From positions 186,001 to 250,000 of the forward strand of contig OZ025718.1 of NCBI GenBank assembly GCA_964019335.1: 64,000 nucleotides of DNA, written 5' to 3'. The stretch is from Diplonema japonicum. Its lineage: Eukaryota > Protista > Euglenozoa: Diplonemea. The notes below the pieces were generated by a model, which worked only from the letters and a program-made list of their open reading frames with translations, was not told the DNA's origin and made no database searches. Every line of letters starts with the position of its first letter. The first letter of the stretch is position 1. The translations under genes and the position numbers were made by a program. Of the stretch, positions 4,168 to 46,045 are shown piece after piece.

Positions 4168-5256
4168 TTACCTCCCCAGTCGGTACGTCCGCCTTGGGGT
4201 AGACTCGTAGGGATCATCTTCGTTGTACGGCAGAGGCGGCACCGCCGTAACGGGCTGCTGCGGTACGCGATGCGGCGACACCCGTTGAAGAGACGCCCGC
4301 TGAGGTGACGGGGAGCTGGTGGGGGTGTACCCCGGGATGGGAATGGGGAAATTGTGACTGGCACATGCCTGATATATTGCCTCCAGAGATTTCTCAGCCG
4401 TCTCCAGCTTTTGACCCACTTTACGGTACTTTTCGCCCCCTGCAAGAAGCGCCTCCCTCGCTTCGCTAAGCTCCTTGTGCAACCTCACGTTCTCATTGCC
4501 GTCAGCGACCACTTCAGACGTCAACTGTGCTATCACCTCAGCAGACCCAATACAATTCTTACACTCACCTCTATCCAGTTGTGCTCGCAGCTCAGAAATT
4601 GTCGTATCCTTGGCTTCGAGCATTCCAGCTTGCTGTTCCACTGTCGCGCTGAGAGACACGGATAGGCTTTGCGTCTGATCTTGCTTCGCTGCCTCTGCAT
4701 GGGCTGCTTTGAGTTCTTGCACTTCCGAGGTTTTCTTTTCGCATTCAGCGTGCAGTTCGGTGATGCGATCCTGCAGCTGTTGGAAGGCTGCTAAAATAAT
4801 ATGGCCTTCGACGCTATTTGCGGGAGCAGGGGCAGGGACAGGTGCAACGCTGCTGGAGTGAGGAACGCCTGGCCGTGTACTTGCGGTGGATGCACGTTGG
4901 ATGAGGGAGGCGATGCTTGAGAGGGGGTGCGACAGTGGCGTGTTATGGGCTGTTGCCGTTTTCACGGAGCACGTAGCATTGCTACCGCTGCCATGGTATG
5001 AAGGTGTGGGAGACACAGCATTGTGATCTGACTGTAACACGGAAATCTTGTCAGTTCTCCGCGATCTCTCTGACATCCTGATAGACCTCTCCGACCTCTC
5101 CGACTTTTCTGACCTTTCGGATCTCACCGAAGCCGCCGCCGCATGTTCGCTCGTGATACTCCCTGCCACACTCCCCGACGGTGTTCTCGACGCCACGCTG
5201 TACTTGTTGTCGGTCCTTGCCGCACTTTCGCTTACCGACACTGCGCTGGTCGACAT
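4168..5256 (-). CDS. Hypothetical Ser-rich/coiled-coil protein
   Basis: Long ORF with a heptad-rich centre. The first ATG (MSTSAV) at 5256 follows a T-rich tract ending in AG. Confidence 0.7.
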   Translation of the reverse strand: MSTSAVSVSESAARTDNKYSVASRTPSGSVAGSITSEHAAAASVRSERSEKSERSERSIRMSERSRRTDKISVLQSDHNAVSPTPSYHGSGSNATCSVKTATAHNTPLSHPLSSIASLIQRASTASTRPGVPHSSSVAPVPAPAPANSVEGHIILAAFQQLQDRITELHAECEKKTSEVQELKAAHAEAAKQDQTQSLSVSLSATVEQQAGMLEAKDTTISELRAQLDRGECKNCIGSAEVIAQLTSEVVADGNENVRLHKELSEAREALLAGGEKYRKVGQKLETAEKSLEAIYQACASHNFPIPIPGYTPTSSPSPQRASLQRVSPHRVPQQPVTAVPPLPYNEDDPYESTPRRTYRLGR

Positions 5257-5388
5257 TCTTGAGCTGCCTTTATGGGGGACGTCTTGCAAGGATGCAAAAG
5301 AAAAAAATAAAATTGAATAGTGTGTTAAACCGTTTTAAACCAAAACACATAAGAAAGTAAAAGCGCAGGTTATACACCTGAAATCTTG

Positions 5389-5425
<37 letters not shown>

Positions 5426-5426
<1 letters not shown>

Positions 5427-6916
5427 CATCGCTGCCCCAGAACATTCTTTAGTTTCCTCTTTGAAGGGAGCCCCGTGGTGGGGTCCTCCATCCCGAGGAT
5501 CGAGGTTGTGGCGAGCAAACGCCGGACGGGTTCCTCAGGAAGGCCAGATTTTTCGGGGACGGCGTCGAGGAGCTTGGAACCCACAGCAGCGAAGGAAGGC
5601 GCAGAGGAGCCGGAGGGATCGCAAGGGAGACCCGTGGCGGGATCGACATGGATCCCGGACGACATTTTTTTCCCCTCACCACGGAGCCCTGTGGGGCCTG
5701 TGTAACCTACCTCACGCGGGCGTAGACACGACGCAGGGACTCCTGTAGTCCCGCTACCTGTTGACCACACAACGTTGTAAGCATCCTGCTCAGTATCGGA
5801 TAAACTGTGAATCTGACCAGGTTGCCAGGGTGAACCTGCTTCAAGCTTCCCCTCCACGAGGTCTCCAACCTCGTACTTATGGATGACAGCTCCCTTTTTA
5901 CGATGGATGATGTCGGAGACGTGAGCATGGTGGGCTTCTAAACCCTTCCTTGTGTCGGGGTTCATTGCGTACATGCACTGTACAGAGTGGGAAGGCCAAC
6001 CGGTGGATTTGTCTGTTTGGTACTCCTCACAACGTGCTAGGTAGTCTTCCACTGTGAGGTTTCGGTTTTCAAGGGTCTTTGTGGCTTTGGAAGCCTCGTT
6101 GTAGTCCCAGTACCCGTCGTTGTCCTCGTCGAAGTGGCGGAAAACGATCTTCGCCTTGTCTTGTACTTCGTTGGGTGTCGCTTCGAGTAGCATTCTTGTG
6201 GACTTCTCGGTTTCTTTTTCATCGTCAGAGAGGTCCTTTTCCAGTTTTTCGAACCTCGCGTAGTCGGTCTCGTGCGACTTCTTTTTAACAGGCTTCTTCT
6301 TTTTCTTCCGTTTCATAACGCCTCCTGGAAGGTATGATGTCGAAACCTGCATGCCGGGTGTGATGTATATCACCTCAGGGGAGCCGTCTGTTTGTTTTGA
6401 ATCGGGTTGTTGTTGTTGTTGTTGTTGTTGTTCCGGAGCATCGTCTTCCAATTTAGACAGGATTGAGTTTCGTATTTCGCTTTTTATGTCGTTTGTTTGC
6501 TGGGCCTCCAGTTTGGTTACGCATGTGTCCAACGCTTTTTGAATGAGCTTGTCGCCCGGTGCGAAGCTCTCTGCGGTTTCGTAGGCTTGCATGGCTTTGT
6601 GGTAGTCTTGCAGGTGTCTGCGTGCCTCGCCCAGTCTGAACCATGCTTTTGGGTTTTCGGGCATCAATGCTGATGCCCGTTCGCTGTCATTCCGTGCCCC
6701 TTCGTAGTTGCTCATTCGCAGCCTTGCTACCGCCCTGTTTAGATGGCCCAGTCCATACTGCTCCACGCTTGCTGCAGTGCTCAGTGCCATACCATAATGC
6801 ATCTCTGCTGCTTTGGGGTTGTCCGCTTTCAGGGCAGCATTCCCCGCCTCTCTGTGACGTTCGCTTTGTTCTGCGCTTCCGAGTGAAACCGGGTGGTCCG
6901 GTTGTGTGGCGGGCAT
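5426..6916 (-). CDS. TPR protein with EF-hand-like and Tudor/Agenet-like segments
   Basis: Three TPRs (REAGNAALKA...LNRAVARLRM...KAWFRLGEA), EF loop FDEDNDGYWDYNE, and YEVGDLVEG...WQPGQI...YNVVW. Confidence 0.8.
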
Positions 6917-7275
6917 TTTCTTTTTTTTTGTCTTTTGCTTTTTGTTTTGTTCTTTTTTTAAACAAAGGATGGGGGAGGGGAGAAAGAAAAGACACCTACT
7001 TCAGTAGGAGAACGGATTGTGGCCTTTGCACAAGAATTGCGTAACGATTTTCTTTTTTTTTTTGAAAAAAAGAGAGAGGGGGGGATAACAACTTCCTCCC
7101 TCCCCCTCCCTTTTGTCAAAAAGAATTTGACAAAAGGGGGGGAAAAAAGAGAGAAACAAGTCGGTGGTTTTTCATTTCCCCTCCCACCCACCCCACTTTT
7201 ACCCCCCCCTTTTTCTCAATCTCTGAGGCTTCTCACTTTCTCTCTGTCTCTGTCTCTGTCTCTGTCTCTCTCTGC

Positions 7276-11709: not shown

Positions 11710-12050
11710 AAAAAGAAGAAAAAAAAAAAAAAAGACAAATTAAGGGTACCTGCGGCATGTGGCAGGACACCAAAAGGGGGAAAAGTTGAAAGCACCTTGT
11801 TATTGTAGCTCCAAGGTTCTGCGTGAGGTCTGCGGGCTAACAACGAAGCCGTAGCCGCCCTTGAGGTGAAGACCTCAAGCCTTGCGGTTGATAAGCCTCT
11901 CTGCAGTACAGATGAAGCGGACAAAAGTGTAACACAAGGACTCGTGCGATTCCAAATGGATTTGAGCAATAGCAAGTCACACGAGAAGGGGATGCAGCAG
12001 CTACTAGTACCCCAGCGCTCTCTTGTCATATCAAACACACTCAAAAGATT
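11710..12050 (-). mobile_element. Degenerate 5'-truncated poly(T)-tailed retroposon, subfamily A
   Basis: The segment taagggtacctgcggcatgtggcaggac is shared with 13313-13340 and abuts an A run on the plus strand. The upstream relic frame (..TARLEVF..LLARRP) weakly resembles the C-terminal part of ORF 25975-26874. Confidence 0.6.
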
Positions 12051-12109: not shown

Positions 12110-13249
12110 TTAGAAACGAAGTTCAGCCCCATGTTCCTGTAACACTGGCAGCAAGTCGCGATGGCGGTATTGAAGAGCAAGGCTAGAGGGCGTGTCGCCA
12201 TCCTCACTCCTTGCATTCGGATCAGCCTTGTGCTCAAGCAGAATTGTACATCGGTTGAGGAAGCCCCATCTCGCCCCGTAGTGTAATGGGGTCCAGCCAT
12301 CGTTGTCACGCGCCTCAATGTTCGCCCCAAGCCCTAACAAAAACTGAATCGCTGACCTGGGCAAGCACCCGTCACAGATGGCATAGTGTAAAGGTGTCTT
12401 CCCGTTTTTGCATTTTAGATTGACATCGAGGTCTTCCCCCAAGAGGAGACGCCCCATTGCCTCGAGTTTTTGCCAGTTGATCGAGGTGTCCTTTAAAAAT
12501 AAGCACTGGAAGGGGGTCATCCCATTGGTGTCCTCCTCATGGATGTCTGAACCTAGCTTTATCATCTCTCGCATCAAACCTGTCGTGGTGGCGCCAGAGG
12601 TAGCGGCGACGTGAAGCGGTGAGCTGCCCTTGGGGTTCCTGTATTTCAGTATGGTTTTGCCATGATCGGAGCGCACCAAGAGCTCCGCTACATAGTGACC
12701 ATCTTTACAGCGGAATGCAAGGTGAAGCGGGGTGTCACCTGTTTGGGGTATTTTTTTTTGGGGGGGGGGGAAATTGAAAAAAAAAAAAAAAAAGAATAAC
12801 CCCTAAAACGCCCGCGCGGACGTTTTTGTCCTTATTTCAAAATTTGCTTTTTCGCTAAGTACTTTTTTTTGAACACGGCCCCTGGACTTCAAAATATGGC
12901 GCGGTTTATTTTGTCTTGGAACTACATTTTGCGTTAAAAGTTTTGTTTTAATTGAAACCGGCAGGGTTGGCTTAAAATGAAATCAGATGGTCAAAATAGC
13001 AGCGAAAACGTGAGTCTCCCCCGACTGGTCAGATAAAGAAGAAAAAGACGATGAGGCGGTCAAAGAGGGGCCGGAAACGATGCTTGGGTGGAGAAATACT
13101 CCCAAAGGCCCGAAACATATCATTTCCGTGAAAAGGTGGGCTCAGGACACCTCTAGGTGAAGCGGCCAATGAGGAGGGTGTTTTTAATCTTTTTTTTACA
13201 CACGCAGTACTTGAGCTCATAGTTTCTTCCACGAACGGTCGTTTCGATT

Positions 13250-13307
<58 letters not shown>

Positions 13308-15733
13308 ACATTTAAGGGTACCTGCGGTATGTGGCAGGACGCCTGAAGAGTCTCAATCTATCTCTTGATCGAACCTTTCTGCTGTGGTGTGGCCTTCGGC
13401 CCCTCGTTCACCAAAAACAGCGGAATCTGAATCTTTCCATCCCAGAGTACAAAATTTGGCTTGGGTTGGTCCTGTTAATGGGCTTACGCTCGGCACCGAA
13501 CATGAAGAGCTACTGGACAACAAATTCTATTTTAACCATCCCGGCTTTTGAGAAAATGAGCAAACCGATTCGTTGACATGCAGCGCTACCTCACCTTTGA
13601 CAACCTGGAAAACATCAATAAGGCCCGAAACTGCACCTCATGCGCAGGTTTCTTGACATCATTGTCAACCGGTGTAGGACTGTGCGGACCCCCTAGCAAG
13701 TGGTTGTCTGTTGACGACAGTGTTATCCCGACAACAATAAAAGTCATGGCACCACGAAAAAACAACTCGGTGGGCATCAAGGTGATCGCTACATGCGACT
13801 CATAAAGCGGTTACCTGGCGAAGTTCAACATTTTCAGCAAGAAGTCCACAACACAGGACCTAGTCATGCGTACTGTCGACTCCTAAGGGTTTGCTGTCGA
13901 CCCCTGACCGGCAAGACCAGCTCCAGGGGACTCGAGTTCGGCATATTGAAAACCCGGAAGTGGACCATGGTCGTTTTTTGCGTGTTTCCGTGTCCTTTGG
14001 GTCCCCACCAGGGTAAATTCTAATGTTAAGCGCGCACCCCGACGGAGTACACCTTAAAGCCGTAGCGCTTGCGTTTAGCTGGTTGAAAAACGCTGTGCTT
14101 AAGGCGGGAGAAGGAGCGAATCAATGCTCAGCCCTTGACCGGGGGTGGTATGCAGCTTTCCAGCTGGGGGAGTCCTGGAATGCAGCATCTCCACTTTTGA
14201 TAGTGTCCCGTTGCCCTGTGAGCCAAAGTGGACACAACAAGAAGATATGGAGAAATGTGTCGCGGCCCAGGACACGGCCTATGTAAGGCGTTGTAATCTC
14301 TTCCGTTGTAGACCAGTAGTCCTTGACGCCCACCCTGCAGACTTCGTCCATCAAGGCGGGCAGAACCCAGACGGCGATCCAGGTGTTCAGTTGTACCACG
14401 TCTGCGTCGAATGTGGTGCCCTTGGATGTGGTGCCCTTGGATGTGGCATACACCTTTGAACAGCTGATAATGGACCTCAGCAAGCTGTTTGCGATAAACA
14501 AACTGAAAAGTTGTAGCCTATCCATGTTGCTGTTCGATGTTGCTGGACTCCTGTACCCATGTCATTTCTTGGCCGGTATACGGTTGATATTTGTCCCCCA
14601 ACGCACACCACCCTCATCTGAGGTGGTGCTGGAGTTGGAAGAAGCTCTTCAGAAGGTCCTGAGAAGCTGCTCTCAAATAATAAGTACAAAAGGACACCAA
14701 GCAACCCCCTTGGGGACGGGTTTTTGTGTTTGTTCTTCGCGCAAAAGGGTATTTCAAATAAAAAAGAATTGCGGAGTGCATGGGGGTGCTCACTGTGGTG
14801 ACAAGAGTGGGGAGAAAAGATAATTTTTCTTAAGGACACATATGTCCTCATGGTCCTTTAGTGGTTAATAAAAAAAAGAACAGAGTACACCATACCATTG
14901 GAGTTCGTTGCTGTCACATCAGCACCGTGCTTCAACAGGAGGGAGACAAAGCATCCGGTGTGGTCAAAGTTGGCGGCAGTGTGGAGGGGAGTTTCTTTAC
15001 GGACGTTACGAACATTTACGTCTGCCCCGTGCTGTAGGAGAAGTGTGGCGGCGTTCAAATTGCTTTCCTTGCACGCGCGGTGCAGCGCCGTGCAGCCATC
15101 ACCGTTGGCTGCATTCACATCTCTTGCGTGTTGCAAAATCACAGCGAAGTACCTGGTGGCACACACAGCCTCATGAAGAAGCGTGGTTTCGTTACGGTAA
15201 ATCCACAAGCCCGTATGCACACTTGCTGAGGTGCGGGATAAAAGCAAGTCAACGCTTGTTAAGTAGGTGTATCTGATTTCTGATATTATTATCTCGTAAA
15301 TGAATCTTGCTGTTCTTTCCGGGTTGTCGCACAGCCCAGCGTCAATGAAAAGATCGAGTATGTCGCACAGCGACGCGTTCCCAATCTCATTATTGGTGAA
15401 GAATTTCCCGGCCTTAAACCTTGAGACCAACGTTGAAAAACTAGAGCACCCTATTTCGTCCAGTTTCATTTTAGCCCCGACAGCTTTGTCCAGTTCCACC
15501 TGCAGCTCGCTCTCATCTTCAAAAGGGAGATCGCCGACGTTTCTTCCATCATGCTTGTCTCCAACTTCATAACCGTCAAATGTTAAGGCAAATATTTCTA
15601 AAGATATCCCGGCTAACGTTGCGATTCTGTCCTTCACATCTCTCATCCCCTCGGTTGCTCCTGCTTCTATGCAGATGACTTCGCGGGATGGGAGAACAGC
15701 CTGTAGGCTCACAGACGGACCGTGTGTATCCAT
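12110..15733 (-). CDS. Ubiquitin-like N-terminal domain + ankyrin-repeat protein, 2 exons (15733-14896, 12738-12110)
   Basis: Donor AAT G|GTATGG at 14895 and acceptor CAAACAG|GT GAC at 12739 join to give the intact ankyrin motif ATNSNGDTPLHLA. The intron is 2157 nt. Confidence 0.85.
12800..13900 (+). mobile_element. piggyBac relic A (left end + disrupted transposase 5' half)
   Basis: End (A)TAA|CCCCTAAAACG. Relic peptides FNLFFTHAVLELIVSSTN, IWLGLVLLMGL..NMKSYWTT, LSVDDSVIP, PRKNNSVGIKVIATCDS..GY, with stops and frameshifts. Confidence 0.85.
13251..13412 (-). mobile_element. 5'-truncated retroposon with T54 3' tail inserted in piggyBac A transposase
   Basis: Minus strand encodes VNEGPKATPQQKGSIKR*, matching the C-terminus GTKARLQKGSIKR* of ORF 25975-26874. 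It is followed by hairpin CCTGC/GCAGG, CCCTTAA, and T54. Confidence 0.85.
13930..14864 (-). mobile_element. piggyBac relic B (left end + disrupted transposase 5' half)
   Basis: End TTAA|CCACTAAAGGACC at 14864-14868 (minus). Peptides LFSLFI, VKDYWST..TPYIGRVLGRDTFLHI, PGQGLSID, QPAKRKRYGFKVY. Confidence 0.85.
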
Positions 15734-25910: not shown

Positions 25911-26815
25911 AAAAAAAAAGGCGATGTTTAAGGGCAAATCCCACTCGAGGACCACCCTTAGGGGGGGTGGGGGTCTATCTCTTGATGCTTCCTTTTTGGA
26001 GCCTCGCTTTCGTTCCGATGGCGGATACCAGTGTCTTTCGCAGACGGTTGATGCGGTCCTTCTTCAGGTTGGTCTTCAGCTCTCTTAGCCTGTCCTGGGT
26101 TTCTCGTGAGGCGAAGATCGGTCTCCTTGCAAAGCCTATCGCCGCCTTCCCTCCTATTGCCATGAGGGACTTCACTCTCGTTTTGTTCTTCGCCGGGAAA
26201 GGCCTTTTCCTTCCTTGTAATGCGCACCTGTCGTTCACCTTTTGGATCAGTTTCTTGATCCTTCGCGCCTTTTCATCCTGCGTCATTCCCAGCGATCTTC
26301 GTGTCGTCGCTTCGAAGTCTAGGGCTAACTCCACCGCCGTCACCTCCGACGTCGTGTCTTCTTTAACCCATCTTAGCTCCGACATCCATTTCAACAGCGA
26401 CTCCGCGTACATCCGCAGTATCCCACTTGTCGTCCCGAGCTGTTCCAACGTCGGCGTCAAGTGCTTTACTCCTACCACTTTCCGTTCCCACGGCAGTTCT
26501 CCTCCAAAATCCTCCACTTGGATCAGTTCTTCATCACGTTTTGCTACTATCATCGCCAGGTACCTCTGCAACCTCTCCAGGTGTGCAAATCCGTGCCCCC
26601 TCGGCAAGATCCCGTGCAGTTCCAGGCAGAGAGGCCAGCCCGACCTGTCGCGTAGCGGTTCCAACCCGTCCCTCGCCAGCTCTTCCAGCGCAAGTGGGCA
26701 TTCGTACAGCTGGTGCCGTAGCAGCGTCACTGTGTTCTGGTGTACTGCTGTGCATATGTCGCATCTATAATTCTGAGGAAGCATTGTCTCTCCGGGTGGT
26801 CTCCCGTCCCCTCTT
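25911..26815 (-). mobile_element. 5'-truncated non-LTR retrotransposon: zinc-finger-like + C-terminal domain, 3' hairpin, T tail
   Basis: ORF with YRCDICTAVH..LLRHQLYECP and KWMSELRW..VTAVELALDFEATT..IGFARRP..QKGSIKR*. After the stop: hairpin TAAGGG..CCCTTA, AACATCGCC, T run. No RT domain is retained. Confidence 0.7.
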
Positions 26816-26844
26816 TTCAAAAAAAAAAAAAAAAAAAAAAAGAA

Positions 26845-27175
26845 GAAGAAGAAGAATGACTTTGGTTGCTTCATAAACCGCCTGGCGTACGAGCAACTTC
26901 TTAACGCTTGTAGCGGATGTTGCTACCCTTCTGTGCTGAAGGATGCATGGCTGCGTGGGTGGACTACGATAGGTTGCTGGCCTCGGCTGCGCCCATCATT
27001 TTTTCTCAGGACGTACACCCCACTTGTCAGCTCGAAGTCTATCACTAGTTCTAGCCTGGTTACAGATCCCTGCTTGTTCCATTCCAACTTCGGGAGCCAC
27101 TTGAATACTTCCGGCACAATCTGTGCTCTCATGAAGTTCATCATCAAGTGCTTACGGAACCTGACTAACCCCCTT
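26845..27175 (-). mobile_element. Second, divergent fragment of the same retroelement C-terminal domain
   Basis: VFKWLPKLEW..VTRLELVIDFELTSG aligns with LLKWMSELRW..VTAVELALDFEATT. Frameshifted, and ends next to a T/TTC run. Confidence 0.6.
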
Positions 27176-28323: not shown

Positions 28324-28845
28324 GGAACTGTTTACTTGATTACAGGGGACGCACCGAGTTGTAGCTTTTTCTTCTGCGTTTCCGCGTCGTGTCCTTAATG
28401 CGTGGCGCTCATACAGTTTGCTGCCTGTTCGTCACCCTGAGCATCTGCGTTACGTTCTTCCAATTGGACACTACCGGTGATGTACTTCTGATCATGTTAT
28501 CCCACCGGCTACAGAAAAAAATATATGAGTTAAAGGAGGCCGGTGTTGGCGGCGCCCTGCACAAGAACTGTCCACTTGATTACAGGGGGCGCGCCGCGGC
28601 CGAGTTGTAGCTTCTTCTGCGTTCCGCGTCGTGTCCTTAATGCGTGCGGTGTACAGCTCAACCCCAGCCAGAGTGTCCCGGGTAACCAAGATTCGGCTCT
28701 CGTGCAGTTTGCTGCCTGTTCGTCACCCTGAGCATCTGCATTATGTTCTTCCACTCGGGCGCTACCGGTGATGACCGACGAGGAGGTCAACAGCGAACAA
28801 CACATCTGGTGTTTTTCTTATATTTTCATGTTATCCCCACCACCT
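28324..28845 (-). mobile_element. Two tandem copies of retroposon subfamily D (copy 28515-28845 keeps the 3' hairpin and T run)
   Basis: 28324-28510 and 28565-28845 are homologous. The end ggaggccggtgttggcggcgccct recurs at 27638, 36484 and 53258. Confidence 0.65.
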
Positions 28846-28910
28846 GAAAAAAAAAAAAAAAAAAAGAAAAAAAAAGCGCTTTCATCTCGTATGTGATCGC
28901 CTCCCCTGTT

Positions 28911-45804: not shown

Positions 45805-46045
45805 GGAAAAAAAAAGGCGATGTTTAGAGCGGCGGGGAGTCGATTTCTTGTATTGTTTCGCTTTTTTCGTCGAAAGAAGAAGAAAAAAAAATCGATCATT
45901 TAATGTTAAGGTACTCTGTTCAATCACCGCAGAGTACCATAAAGTACAGCGGGGGGGAAGTTGTAGTCAAAAAAAAAAAAAACTCAAAGTGCAGGACAAA
46001 CCCCCTCATGGAGGGCCGCCCTTAAAAAAAAAAGGAGTCGGTTGA
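45805..46045 (-). mobile_element. Stack of three or four T-tailed retroposon 3' ends
   Basis: aaaaggcgatgttta (as at 25916); perfect hairpin GGTACTCTG/CAGAGTACC + TTAA; a subfamily C end; aaaaggagtcgg (as at 11679). Confidence 0.6.

Follow-up and report, generated by a model that had tools for sequence, protein, structure and literature searches.

A young LINE of Diplonema japonicum with a terminal T run and short T tracts as insertion sites

RESULTS

A 108-bp LINE fragment followed by 54 T interrupts a piggyBac relic

To our knowledge, every well-studied LINE has a tail of poly(A) or of short repeats that contain A. In a 64,000-nt stretch of the Diplonema japonicum genome (contig OZ025718.1, positions 186,001 to 250,000; referred to here as the window), a short insert runs from the end of a reading frame into 54 T, which raises the question of whether a LINE can be copied from an RNA that ends in U. 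An earlier note on this DNA had described an insert of about 160 bp that breaks a piggyBac relic, and this was borne out: the plus strand reads A54 at 13251-13304, followed by 108 bp at 13305-13412. The note had also pointed to a minus-strand C terminus resembling that of the ORF at 25975-26874 and, after the stop codon, to a hairpin, a CCCTTAA-type end, and 54 T, all of which were recovered by sequence comparison and folding. Translation of minus-strand positions 13411-13358 gave VNEGPKATPQQKGSIKR and a stop, i.e., the final 17 codons and the stop codon of ORF2 of a LINE; the ORF at 25975-26874 (minus strand) ends in ..GTKARLQKGSIKR and a stop, which is the C terminus of a LINE ORF2. The 3′ UTR of the insert comprises 53 nt, terminates in CCCTTAAATGTCTC, and is followed directly by T54. 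It was predicted to fold into a single long hairpin with an inner CCUGC/GCAGG stem and an outer GAGAC/GUCUC stem (−21.1 kcal/mol; z = −4.8), and none of 200 shuffled sequences folded equally well. At least 37 further copies match the 108 bp with 100% identity, and the insert is therefore very young. The site is composed as follows.

13192..13250, plus strand: piggyBac transposase relic, left part (paralogs match PF13843 across the site; 30-copy alignment)
13251..13304, minus strand: T54 tail (A54 on the plus strand), up to 7 T of which are duplicated target
13305..13357, minus strand: 53-nt 3′ UTR with one extended hairpin, ending in CCCTTAAATGTCTC (fold z = −4.8); the module recurs on the ends of other retroposon families
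13358..13412, minus strand: last 17 codons and stop of ORF2, VNEGPKATPQQKGSIKR, with the 5′-truncation point; the C-terminal motif is common to the ORF2 of other subfamilies
13413..13417, minus strand: T5 at the 5′ junction, remainder or duplication of the T7 target (empty-site comparison)
13413..13856, plus strand: piggyBac transposase relic, right part (paralog matches)

The sole stop-free piece of the interrupted relic (75 amino acids) gave no Pfam match, and its piggyBac identity comes from paralogs. These match positions 9-182 of DDE_Tnp_1_7 (PF13843) with stops and an E value of about 1e-16, in an alignment that spans the insertion point (e.g., C7:168151-168654 [L044] and C10:411935-412438 [L049]).

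The insert belongs to a two-ORF APE-type LINE whose sense strand ends in T

The insert is a copy of a young and abundant APE-type LINE family of D. japonicum that is currently, or was very recently, active. The family carries two ORFs (ORF1 and ORF2), the second with an APE endonuclease, a reverse transcriptase (RT), and a CCHC domain. The endonuclease matched PF03372 (Exo_endo_phos) with E values of 6e-13 in L031 and 4e-9 in L033, and PF14529 weakly; the RT downstream of it matched PF00078 (RVT_1) with an E value of 4e-21. Among PDB entries, the RT matched R2 (5e-12) and L1 ORF2p (7e-9), E values that do not discriminate between clades. RNase H (PF00075) had no match in ORF2 or in its residues 880-1140. 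A 2A-like ..VEPNPGP motif is located immediately upstream of the APE domain. Residues C1147, C1150, H1163, and C1168 of the CCHC motif were invariant in 11 sequences, and CCHC and C-terminal columns of ORF2 were invariant across diplonemid relatives. The closest relatives outside D. japonicum are LINE proteins of Diplonema papillatum (e.g., DIPPA_05013 and DIPPA_32170). A metagenome scan with the ORF2 alignment returned 12 loci of 23-53% identity, none with an interpretable 3′ end.

A second, longer copy in the window belongs to another subfamily (subfamily 1).

25975..26818, minus strand: 5′-truncated ORF2 C terminus (CCHC and conserved C-terminal domain) of a subfamily-1 copy, 99.4% identical to the full-length copy L031
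25910..25974, minus strand: subfamily-1 3′ UTR, ending in CCCTTAAACATCGCC, then T10
26819..26841, minus strand: T23 directly upstream of the 5′ junction of this copy, its target T tract

The position of the RT in full-length copies had been named in the earlier note as a check on polarity, and the APE and RT of full-length relatives were found on the same strand as the C-terminal ORF. All 18 subfamily-1 copies aligned to the reference 3′ UTR, while their 5′ starts varied from 4207 to 6320. Seventeen of the 18 alignments extended to the terminal position 7016; that of L017 halted at 6981, where another element is inserted, with the terminal motif present beyond it. Still shorter copies were also present, with lengths of 108 bp and about 41 bp. 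A complete spliced leader was present at 25 of 41 LINE 5′ ends and tandem leader relics at 2 of 41. Since full-length copies begin with a spliced leader, the sense RNA is the template, and the insert is, as the note had proposed, a 5′-truncated copy of a protein-coding APE and RT LINE family whose sense strand is the T-ended one. If the opposite strand were the template, A54 would be an ordinary poly(A) tail and the ORF similarity coincidental or antisense. The run does read poly(A) on the plus strand; however, it falls there 5′ of the insert and not 3′, ORF1, ORF2, and the spliced leader are all on the T-ended strand, and truncation takes the end distant from the T run. We therefore rejected this reading, whose probability is negligible. 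An assembly artefact as the source of the observation was likewise rejected.

At least 45 T were gained at the insertion site

In the 30-copy alignment, the empty site reads gattc-A7(8,9)-cagcgg in 29 paralogous piggyBac relics without the insert, while the filled copy has A54 on one flank and A5 on the other. The target run, previously given as A5 (gattc-aaaaa-cag), is thus corrected to A7-9; a long A run, which could already have been present at the empty sites, was found in none of them. Because the 29 empty paralogs carry only A7-A9, the T gained in this event, a comparison with n = 1 clean empty site, amount to at least 45 (about 45-52).

Growth of a short T run to T54 by microsatellite expansion after insertion would leave the same picture. 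The genome is extremely rich in long A/T runs (245 A/T runs of at least 9 in the 64 kb), and homopolymer lengths are error prone in long-read assemblies. Nevertheless, the 29 paralogous sites stayed at 7-9 A, many copies match the insert with 100% identity, which makes it very young, and its subfamily, unlike the others, typically has long runs. We regard expansion as very improbable.

T runs follow LINE 3′ ends throughout the genome

The 3′ motifs of the three subfamilies had 503, 145, and 242 matches genome-wide, compared to control counts of 0-3. Among the matches listed, a T run followed the 3′ end in about 97/100, 88/100, and 84/84 cases, in the same order, and none of about 280 listed ends of the three subfamilies was followed by an A run (runs were counted by hand from 35-nt pattern-search matches). 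A T run was also found after the 3′ end at all 34 sampled loci, which represent 31 independent copies. Young copies behaved alike: those with 100% identity terminate in T runs. TTTT stood directly after about 67/100 listed subfamily-1 ends and about 97/100 listed ends of the insert's subfamily, with a background of 0.037 at random positions. Run lengths differed between subfamilies. Those of the insert's subfamily are long, with about 56/100 listed ends reaching at least 13-15 T, whereas the other two have a mode of 8-10 T and only 8/100 listed subfamily-1 ends had at least 15 T. Run length is thus a property of the subfamily. After 100%-identical copies the runs ranged from 9 to >50 T and included tails of 30-54 T; copies of 99-100% identity are present in both the insert's subfamily and subfamily 1.

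The termini of the elements include ..CCCTTAAATGTCTC and ..ACATCGCC. In single-sequence folds, the hairpin of the insert's subfamily stood out (z = −4.8), while z values of −0.2 and +0.8 for subfamilies 1 and 2 were not significant. About 9/100 listed copies of the insert's subfamily showed signs of slippage, with ..GTCTC(TC)1-3 ahead of the T run, and about 8/100 listed ends were missing the final 1-3 bases. The LINE sense strand contains 15% T and no run of T5 or longer within its 6.6-6.9 kb in the three subfamilies, which is about what this T content predicts. The sequences preceding every T and A run were also clustered by k-mers, which gave results too noisy for use.

Further T-ended elements in the window are the following.

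11719..11746, minus strand: 3′ end of a further retroposon carrying the same hairpin/CCCTTAA module, then T15
28515..28875, minus strand: SINE-like copy of about 340 bp with a T run and CAG on its 5′ side and its own 3′ module and T run
45807..45824, minus strand: subfamily-1 3′ end and T9, in a head-to-tail stack
45969..45991, minus strand: subfamily-2-type 3′ end (..CACTTTGAG) and T14, in the same stack

The hairpin/CCCTTAA module and the T run of the LINE are also found at the ends of a SINE-like family (about 340 bp) and of other bodies. No Rfam family matched the insert or the SINE-like element. For the LINE, a Pol III terminator is an unlikely origin of the tail, since the element is 7 kb long and has a spliced leader at its head; this argument covers the LINE and not its short partners.

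Copies are inserted in T tracts

TTTT was found within 5 nt upstream of the 5′ junction in 13 of 16 cases (background, 0.046; P of about 2e-15). The 5′ junctions thus also adjoin T runs, and the target is therefore a T tract. In addition, older copies have newer ones inserted immediately after their T tails. At L002, L006, L009, and L010, we saw T-rich direct repeats of 6-9 bp, whose left boundary is indistinguishable from tail T; TTTTGTTTT in L002, TTTCCT in L006, and T8C in L010 flank the element on both sides. Target-site duplication probably makes up part of the T run that follows each copy, and in two subfamilies this may apply to most of it. Since target duplication could account for all or most of the run in subfamilies 1 and 2, a true tail is demonstrated only for the insert's subfamily.

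These repeats also bear on whether there is a tail at all. The element could end at the last base of its UTR and insert into existing T tracts, so that its 3′ T run would consist of duplicated target or of what is left of the tract. T runs at both junctions are in line with this, as are the subfamily-1 copies L002, L006, L010, and L014, in which the run after the element duplicates the run before it, and the modal 8-10 T, a normal duplication length. This does not fit with T7-9 at the empty site versus T5 plus T54 at the filled site, nor with runs of at least 13-15 T in over half of the listed ends of the insert's subfamily versus 8% in subfamily 1. A pure target effect should be independent of subfamily, and the difference in run length therefore speaks against this explanation, which we consider improbable.

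The RNA end probably carries a U tract copied from the donor

The combination of a terminal T run with short T runs as targets indicates that the element is reverse transcribed from a U-rich RNA end. That the T-ended LINE is copied into DNA in this manner, roughly as a mirror image of human L1, is largely supported by the sequence comparisons. In the L1 model, the tail pairs with the nicked target; here, copies insert where the primed strand has an A tract and the sense strand a T tract, which fits priming by A:U pairing. Of the earlier proposal of a mirror-image L1 primed from a U-tailed RNA at A-rich targets, the T-ended sense strand, the T-tract target, and the net gain of T stood, while a templated tract fits the data at least as well as its U-tailed RNA.

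We consider it likely that the insert is a 108-bp 5′-truncated copy that entered the T7 tract of the piggyBac relic by target-primed reverse transcription from a templated U tract adjusted by slippage. The endonuclease would nick the strand that bears the A tract, and the freed oligo(A) 3′ end would pair with the U tract of the RNA just 3′ of the UTR hairpin and prime cDNA synthesis. A second nick a few bases off within the same tract would produce the T-rich duplication. The U tract would be transcribed from the T run of the donor copy itself rather than made by a uridylyl transferase, and realignment of the primer together with slippage at initiation would then make it longer or shorter, as occurs in LINEs with microsatellite tails.

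Alternatively, a terminal uridylyl transferase could add the U tail to the LINE RNA after transcription, reverse transcription being primed on the untemplated tail as on the poly(A) of L1 RNA. Tails of 30-54 T on 100%-identical copies, and the spread from 9 to >50 T among identical copies, would fit a tail made anew in each cycle, and uridylyl transferases are numerous in Euglenozoa. The U-tailing known from this group is mostly mitochondrial, however; subfamilies that are similar in age have very different tail lengths, for which heritable templated tails are the simpler account; and the (TC)n stutter at the junction indicates slippage at initiation. Conversely, a tail that is purely templated should become shorter with each round of copying if slippage does not restore it, and de novo U addition is the simpler explanation for 30-54 T in 100%-identical copies. 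We judge a templated U tract with RT slippage to be at least as likely as a posttranscriptional U tail; it also accounts for the subfamily-specific run length. Uridylation appears a rather unlikely alternative. No poly(A) or U-ended loose ends were present in the sequencing runs compared with the elements, which comprised contigs alone, of unspecified library type and without molecule ends.

DISCUSSION

Neither a T-tailed LINE nor the termini of diplonemid LINEs turned up in our literature search, a weak negative since the word search for "poly(T)" was crippled by its parentheses. A protein-coding LINE in which tail and target are both inverted (T for A) constitutes a natural test of the base-pairing model of priming. 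It also poses the question of how a Pol II-type, trans-spliced RNA gains a 3′ U tract, with read-through and internal initiation, termination in the T tract, and uridylation as options. In Euglenozoa, T tracts signal trans-splicing and the coupled 3′ processing, and an element that inserts into such tracts and creates further ones may exploit the polycistronic gene processing of its host and also alter it. The family is young, has many 100%-identical copies, and is transcribed, which makes it accessible to experiments.

A bolder and doubtful version of the uridylation scenario is that a cellular uridylyl transferase adds untemplated oligo(U) or poly(U) to the LINE RNA and that this tail is the obligatory primer-binding site for integration. 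If true, retrotransposition would depend on RNA uridylation, a modification by which human cells restrict L1. As the elements and their partners spread, they would have seeded much of the extraordinary T/A homopolymer load of the genome, and the A tracts reported upstream of 3′ splice sites in D. japonicum could belong to the antisense part of this load.

Like mammalian L1, the Diplonema element is a LINE with APE and RT, a CCHC motif near the ORF2 C terminus, frequent 5′ truncation, a homopolymer 3′ tail complementary to the homopolymer released by the first nick, and head-to-tail stacking in tails. In contrast to L1, its tail is T and not A, its target is a sense-strand T tract rather than TT/AAAA, and it has a conserved 3′ UTR hairpin or motif before the tail, a trans-spliced leader at the 5′ end, and a T-poor sense strand. 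Its tail is also probably not made by a polymerase acting on RNA; in human cells, L1 is inhibited when its RNA is uridylated.

Stringent-type LINEs (eel UnaL2/L2, CR1, and the I factor with (TAA)n) have a 3′ stem-loop and short-repeat tails. Like the insert's subfamily, they have a conserved 3′ structure beside a non-A repeat tail and show stutter and variable repeat number in tails, consistent with slippage at initiation, and, like the Diplonema LINE, they have nonautonomous partners with the same 3′ module. The Diplonema repeat unit differs in being a single T, with a tail of up to at least 50 nt and a target made of the same homopolymer. T-tailed plant SINEs (e.g., Au SINE) are likewise retroposons with a terminal T run; these are short noncoding Pol III transcripts in which the T run is the Pol III terminator, whereas the Diplonema T run closes a 7-kb protein-coding element headed by a spliced leader.

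Among euglenozoan elements, trypanosomatid ingi/L1Tc resemble the Diplonema LINE in host phylum, APE endonuclease, and zinc-finger-bearing C terminus, and L1Tc also has a 2A-like motif, which in the Diplonema LINE precedes the APE domain. They have one ORF, RNase H, and a poly(A) tail, whereas the Diplonema LINE has two ORFs, no RNase H match, and a T tail. The D. papillatum proteins, automatically annotated as "R2/jockey-like Pol," are 38-46% identical over the RT region and show the same APE-RT-CCHC layout. An RNase H domain is present in some more distant relatives.

Structure of the insert and its empty site

Rereading of the site showed that the earlier note had described the insert accurately (codons, stop codon, hairpin, and 54 T). 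Two parts are seen on the plus strand:

Window 13251-13304, plus strand: A run, 54 A without interruption, read from the sequence
Up to window 13412, plus strand: complex sequence of 108 bp, directly after the A run

On the minus strand, 17 codons and a stop (VNEGPKATPQQKGSIKR* in translation) open the 108 bp. RNA folding of the 53-nt untranslated stretch after the stop yielded a single extended hairpin with an inner CCUGC/GCAGG stem and an outer GAGAC/GUCUC stem (z-score of -4.8; 0 of 200 shuffles folded equally well). The stretch closes with the terminal sequence CCCTTAAATGTCTC, and the 54 T follow directly.

On either side of the insert lies a dispersed repeat, present in at least 40 copies of 95-98% identity. 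In paralogs of the flanks, similarity to the piggyBac transposase domain (PF13843, positions 9-182) spans the insertion point and is broken by internal stops, which justifies the label of a piggyBac relic. We aligned 30 copies of this repeat, comparing one insertion site (n = 1). The insert was present in the window's copy alone, while the other 29 were uninterrupted and displayed an empty site of gattc, 7 to 9 A, and cagcgg; the filled copy carries 54 A on one side of the insert and 5 A on the other. Therefore, the target tract before insertion was about T7 on the sense strand of the element, and between 45 and 52 T were gained. The target is thus longer than the 5 A that had been proposed, and no long A run existed at the empty sites.

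The element is a LINE

The comparison open reading frame (ORF) in the window (25975-26874, minus strand), a relic of the ORF2 C terminus of a subfamily-1 LINE, had more than a thousand candidate matches when searched against the 62.5-Mb assembly that contains the window; of these, 142 were scored, with open frames of up to 1450 aa. Full-length copies (L031, L032, and L033) comprise an ORF1 of ~740 aa and an ORF2 of ~1400 aa. Their ORF2, which shares its strand with the C-terminal ORF, encodes an Exo_endo_phos endonuclease domain and an RVT_1 reverse transcriptase. In an alignment, the C-terminal region showed an invariant C-x2-C-x12-H-x4-C motif together with other conserved positions, common to relatives from D. 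papillatum and diplonemid transcriptomes. No RNase H domain was matched in ORF2 by domain search. The Diplonema japonicum transcriptome (EukProt EP01064) contains proteins that match a piece of ORF2 with 100% identity, showing that the element is transcribed. The insert, whose 108 bp recur without a mismatch in at least 37 other copies, belongs to a subfamily that has the C-terminal ..QKGSIKR* and the 3′ CCCTTAA(A) motif in common with the full-length LINEs, and these motifs would link it to them. By every feature tested, the element is a LINE. It does not have the poly(A) by which L1 and ingi are recognized, and the RNase H criterion likewise speaks against ingi; most closely related are other diplonemid LINEs, which are uncharacterised.

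A 2A-like "ribosome skipping" motif (..VEDGVEPNPGP / ..EQGIEPHPGP) was observed directly ahead of the endonuclease domain:

L031:2756-2791: 2A-like motif, ORF2 residues ~8-19
L033:2435-2470: 2A-like motif, ORF2 residues ~4-15

Trypanosome L1Tc/ingi elements are reported to carry such a motif at the same place, a hint that the element is related to the ingi clade or uses a common expression strategy. The N terminus of ORF1 (L031:398-2608) displayed sub-threshold matches to OTU and otubain cysteine proteases (E, 0.002-0.006). In P0015, a relative from D. japonicum transcripts, a precomputed OTU domain is joined to APE and RT. It would be unusual for a LINE ORF1 to encode an OTU protease.

T runs follow the 3′ ends of three subfamilies

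Of the 34 loci sampled, which represent 31 independent copies and at least three subfamilies, every one had T after the conserved 3′ terminus. Pattern searches of the whole assembly were then tallied by hand on the first 100 listed matches of each subfamily; reversed-pattern controls gave 0-3 matches.

Terminal motifs and their genome-wide matches
Insert's subfamily: motif CAGGTACCCTTAA, 503 matches
Subfamily 1: motif TTAAACATCGCC, 145 matches
Subfamily 2: motif CCTGTACTTTGAG, 242 matches

About 97 of the 100 ends of the insert's subfamily continued into a T run, and ~56 were T throughout the displayed stretch (at least 13-15 T). For subfamily 1, 88 began with T, 67 had at least 4 T, 35 at least 8, and 8 at least 15. 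Sixteen subfamily-2 matches lay in unrelated contexts; the other 84 were all followed by T, most commonly 8-10. T runs predominate, as the earlier note had expected, and A runs came after none of the listed ends of the three subfamilies. In the window, which is very homopolymer-rich, a random position is followed by TTTT with a probability of 0.037.

The sense RNA as template

Two independent markers, the truncation pattern and the spliced leader, agree on the strand. In all 18 alignable subfamily-1 copies, the T side retains the reference 3′ UTR, and the internal start positions differ. Seventeen alignments end at terminal position 7016; that of L017 ends at 6981, at the insertion of another element, with the terminal motif present beyond it. 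The shortest copies of the insert's subfamily measure ~41 bp. Genome-wide, 25 of 41 LINE 5′ ends carry the complete 39-nt diplonemid spliced leader, 14 are cut within the leader at its TTT, adjoining a T run, and 2 show a leader followed by a leader relic:

G000:C60:376464-376498: leader joined to a truncated older leader
C102:195395-195429: leader joined to a truncated older leader

The observation also covers L031:121-153. The double-leader junctions lie at internal AGs (..AAAG|CTACAG.. and ..ACAG|TTTCTG..). Such a structure is the trace that successive cycles of trans-splicing and reverse transcription/retroposition leave behind, and it resembles that described for dinoflagellate retrogenes. 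The common 3′ end, the varied starts, and the leaders identify the sense, trans-spliced RNA as the template, with reverse transcription beginning at the T-run end. The proposed sense strand and 5′ truncation were thereby upheld. The truncation side and leader position rule out an ordinary poly(A) of the opposite strand as the explanation for the A54.

Contributions of tail and target

At 13 of 16 5′ junctions, TTTT occurred at most 5 nt upstream (background, 0.046; P about 2e-15), and new copies were found directly behind T runs of older elements. Hence, the target is a T tract on the sense strand. In several subfamily-1 copies, a T-rich stretch 3′ of the element repeats the stretch 5′ of it:

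L002: TTTTGTTTT
L006: TTTCCT
L010: T8C

Part of each T run is thus probably a target-site duplication, which could make up most of the run in subfamilies 1 and 2; duplicated T are indistinguishable from tail T, and one copy cannot fix the boundary. For the insert's subfamily, the net gain of T and the subfamily-dependent run length indicate a real tail. Long runs were found at 56% of its ends versus 8% in subfamily 1 (first 100 listed each). Since both subfamilies include 99-100% identical copies, this difference contradicts a pure target effect as well as expansion after insertion.

Proposed mechanism and source of the U tract

In the simplest account, an endonuclease would nick the A-tract strand, the oligo(A) 3′ end would pair with a U tract at the RNA 3′ end, and cDNA synthesis would begin at this pairing. 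U-tract priming at an A tract, as the earlier note envisaged it, stands in outline; its view of the source of the U tract fared less well. About 9 of the 100 listed termini of the insert's subfamily have one to three extra TC units ahead of the T run, and about 8 miss their last one to three bases. This stutter marks primer realignment at initiation, by which LINEs with microsatellite tails presumably renew their tails. Together with a subfamily-specific, apparently heritable run length, it favors a U tract transcribed from the donor copy's own T run and adjusted through slippage over de novo uridylation of the LINE RNA. Uridylation would explain tails of 30-54 T on brand-new copies more simply, but given the stutter and run lengths we consider it unlikely.

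Beyond the T run, contigs from public runs contained flanks of other copies only. The last ~45 nt of the subfamily-1 3′ UTR (L031:6941-7074) were covered 10-600x deeper than the LINE body or unique flank in all four public runs, and loose ends at L031 showed T runs directly upstream of position ~6979. Therefore, very short 3′ fragments, or partners with the subfamily-1 3′ module, far outnumber long copies.

Comparison with known elements

The D. japonicum element works similarly to L1 with T in place of A, and similarly to "stringent" LINEs, which have a 3′ stem-loop, a repeat tail, and a SINE partner. No T-tailed LINE is known to us, and none was found in literature searches, in which the term "poly(T)" performs poorly. 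The D. papillatum genome paper lists diplonemid LINE genes without describing their termini (PMC10161547).

Composition, partners, and genomic context

The LINE sense strand (L031:138-7016, L032, and L033) consists of 29% A, 32% G, 24% C, and 15% T. Over 6.6-6.9 kb, the three subfamilies contain no run of five or more T, approximately as expected from composition, and only 2-4 runs of T4; this T poverty fits an RNA that needs to avoid internal U tracts. In the genome, A or T runs of at least 9 occur once per ~260 bp.

A SINE-like family of ~340 bp and other bodies carry the same 3′ modules followed by T runs, and start with a spliced leader or with a T run and (C)AG.

Window 28515-28875, minus strand: SINE-like ~340-bp retroposon; also at L065:1515-1870, L022, L025, and L027

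This nonautonomous retroposon begins GGTGGTGGGGATAACATGG. Its copies end in at least three distinct 3′ modules, and a T run comes after every one of them. It resembles a SINE-type partner family in which LINE 3′ ends are exchanged; no Rfam family was found in it. The T run and (C)AG starts suggest that the target T tract and the element's AG could form a trans-splicing acceptor for the new copy.

The minus strand of the window carries all seven of its distinct T-ended retroposon ends and 25 of its 28 open frames of 250 aa or more. T and A runs of at least 9 are similarly frequent on the two strands (133 and 112). The window (1-64000) is one unidirectional gene cluster with which all seven ends are co-oriented. 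Read antisense (window 13251-13320, plus strand), the insert presents A(n)GAGACATTTAAG|GG, in which AG dinucleotides come within 12 nt of a long A tract. In D. japonicum, atypical poly(A) tracts are reported to replace polypyrimidine tracts ahead of 3′ splice sites (PMC12621601); as pure speculation, some of these tracts might stem from T-tailed retroposons in antisense orientation.

The LINE copy L017 contains a further element:

L017 (G000:C68:313338-317042): MITE-type candidate of ~190 bp, within the LINE 3′ UTR

With terminal inverted repeats (CTATGCTGGCATGGAAACG ... CGTTTCCTGCCAGCATAG), internal GGAAAC repeats, and a flanking duplication of CCCTAAGG, it looks like a MITE-type DNA transposon.
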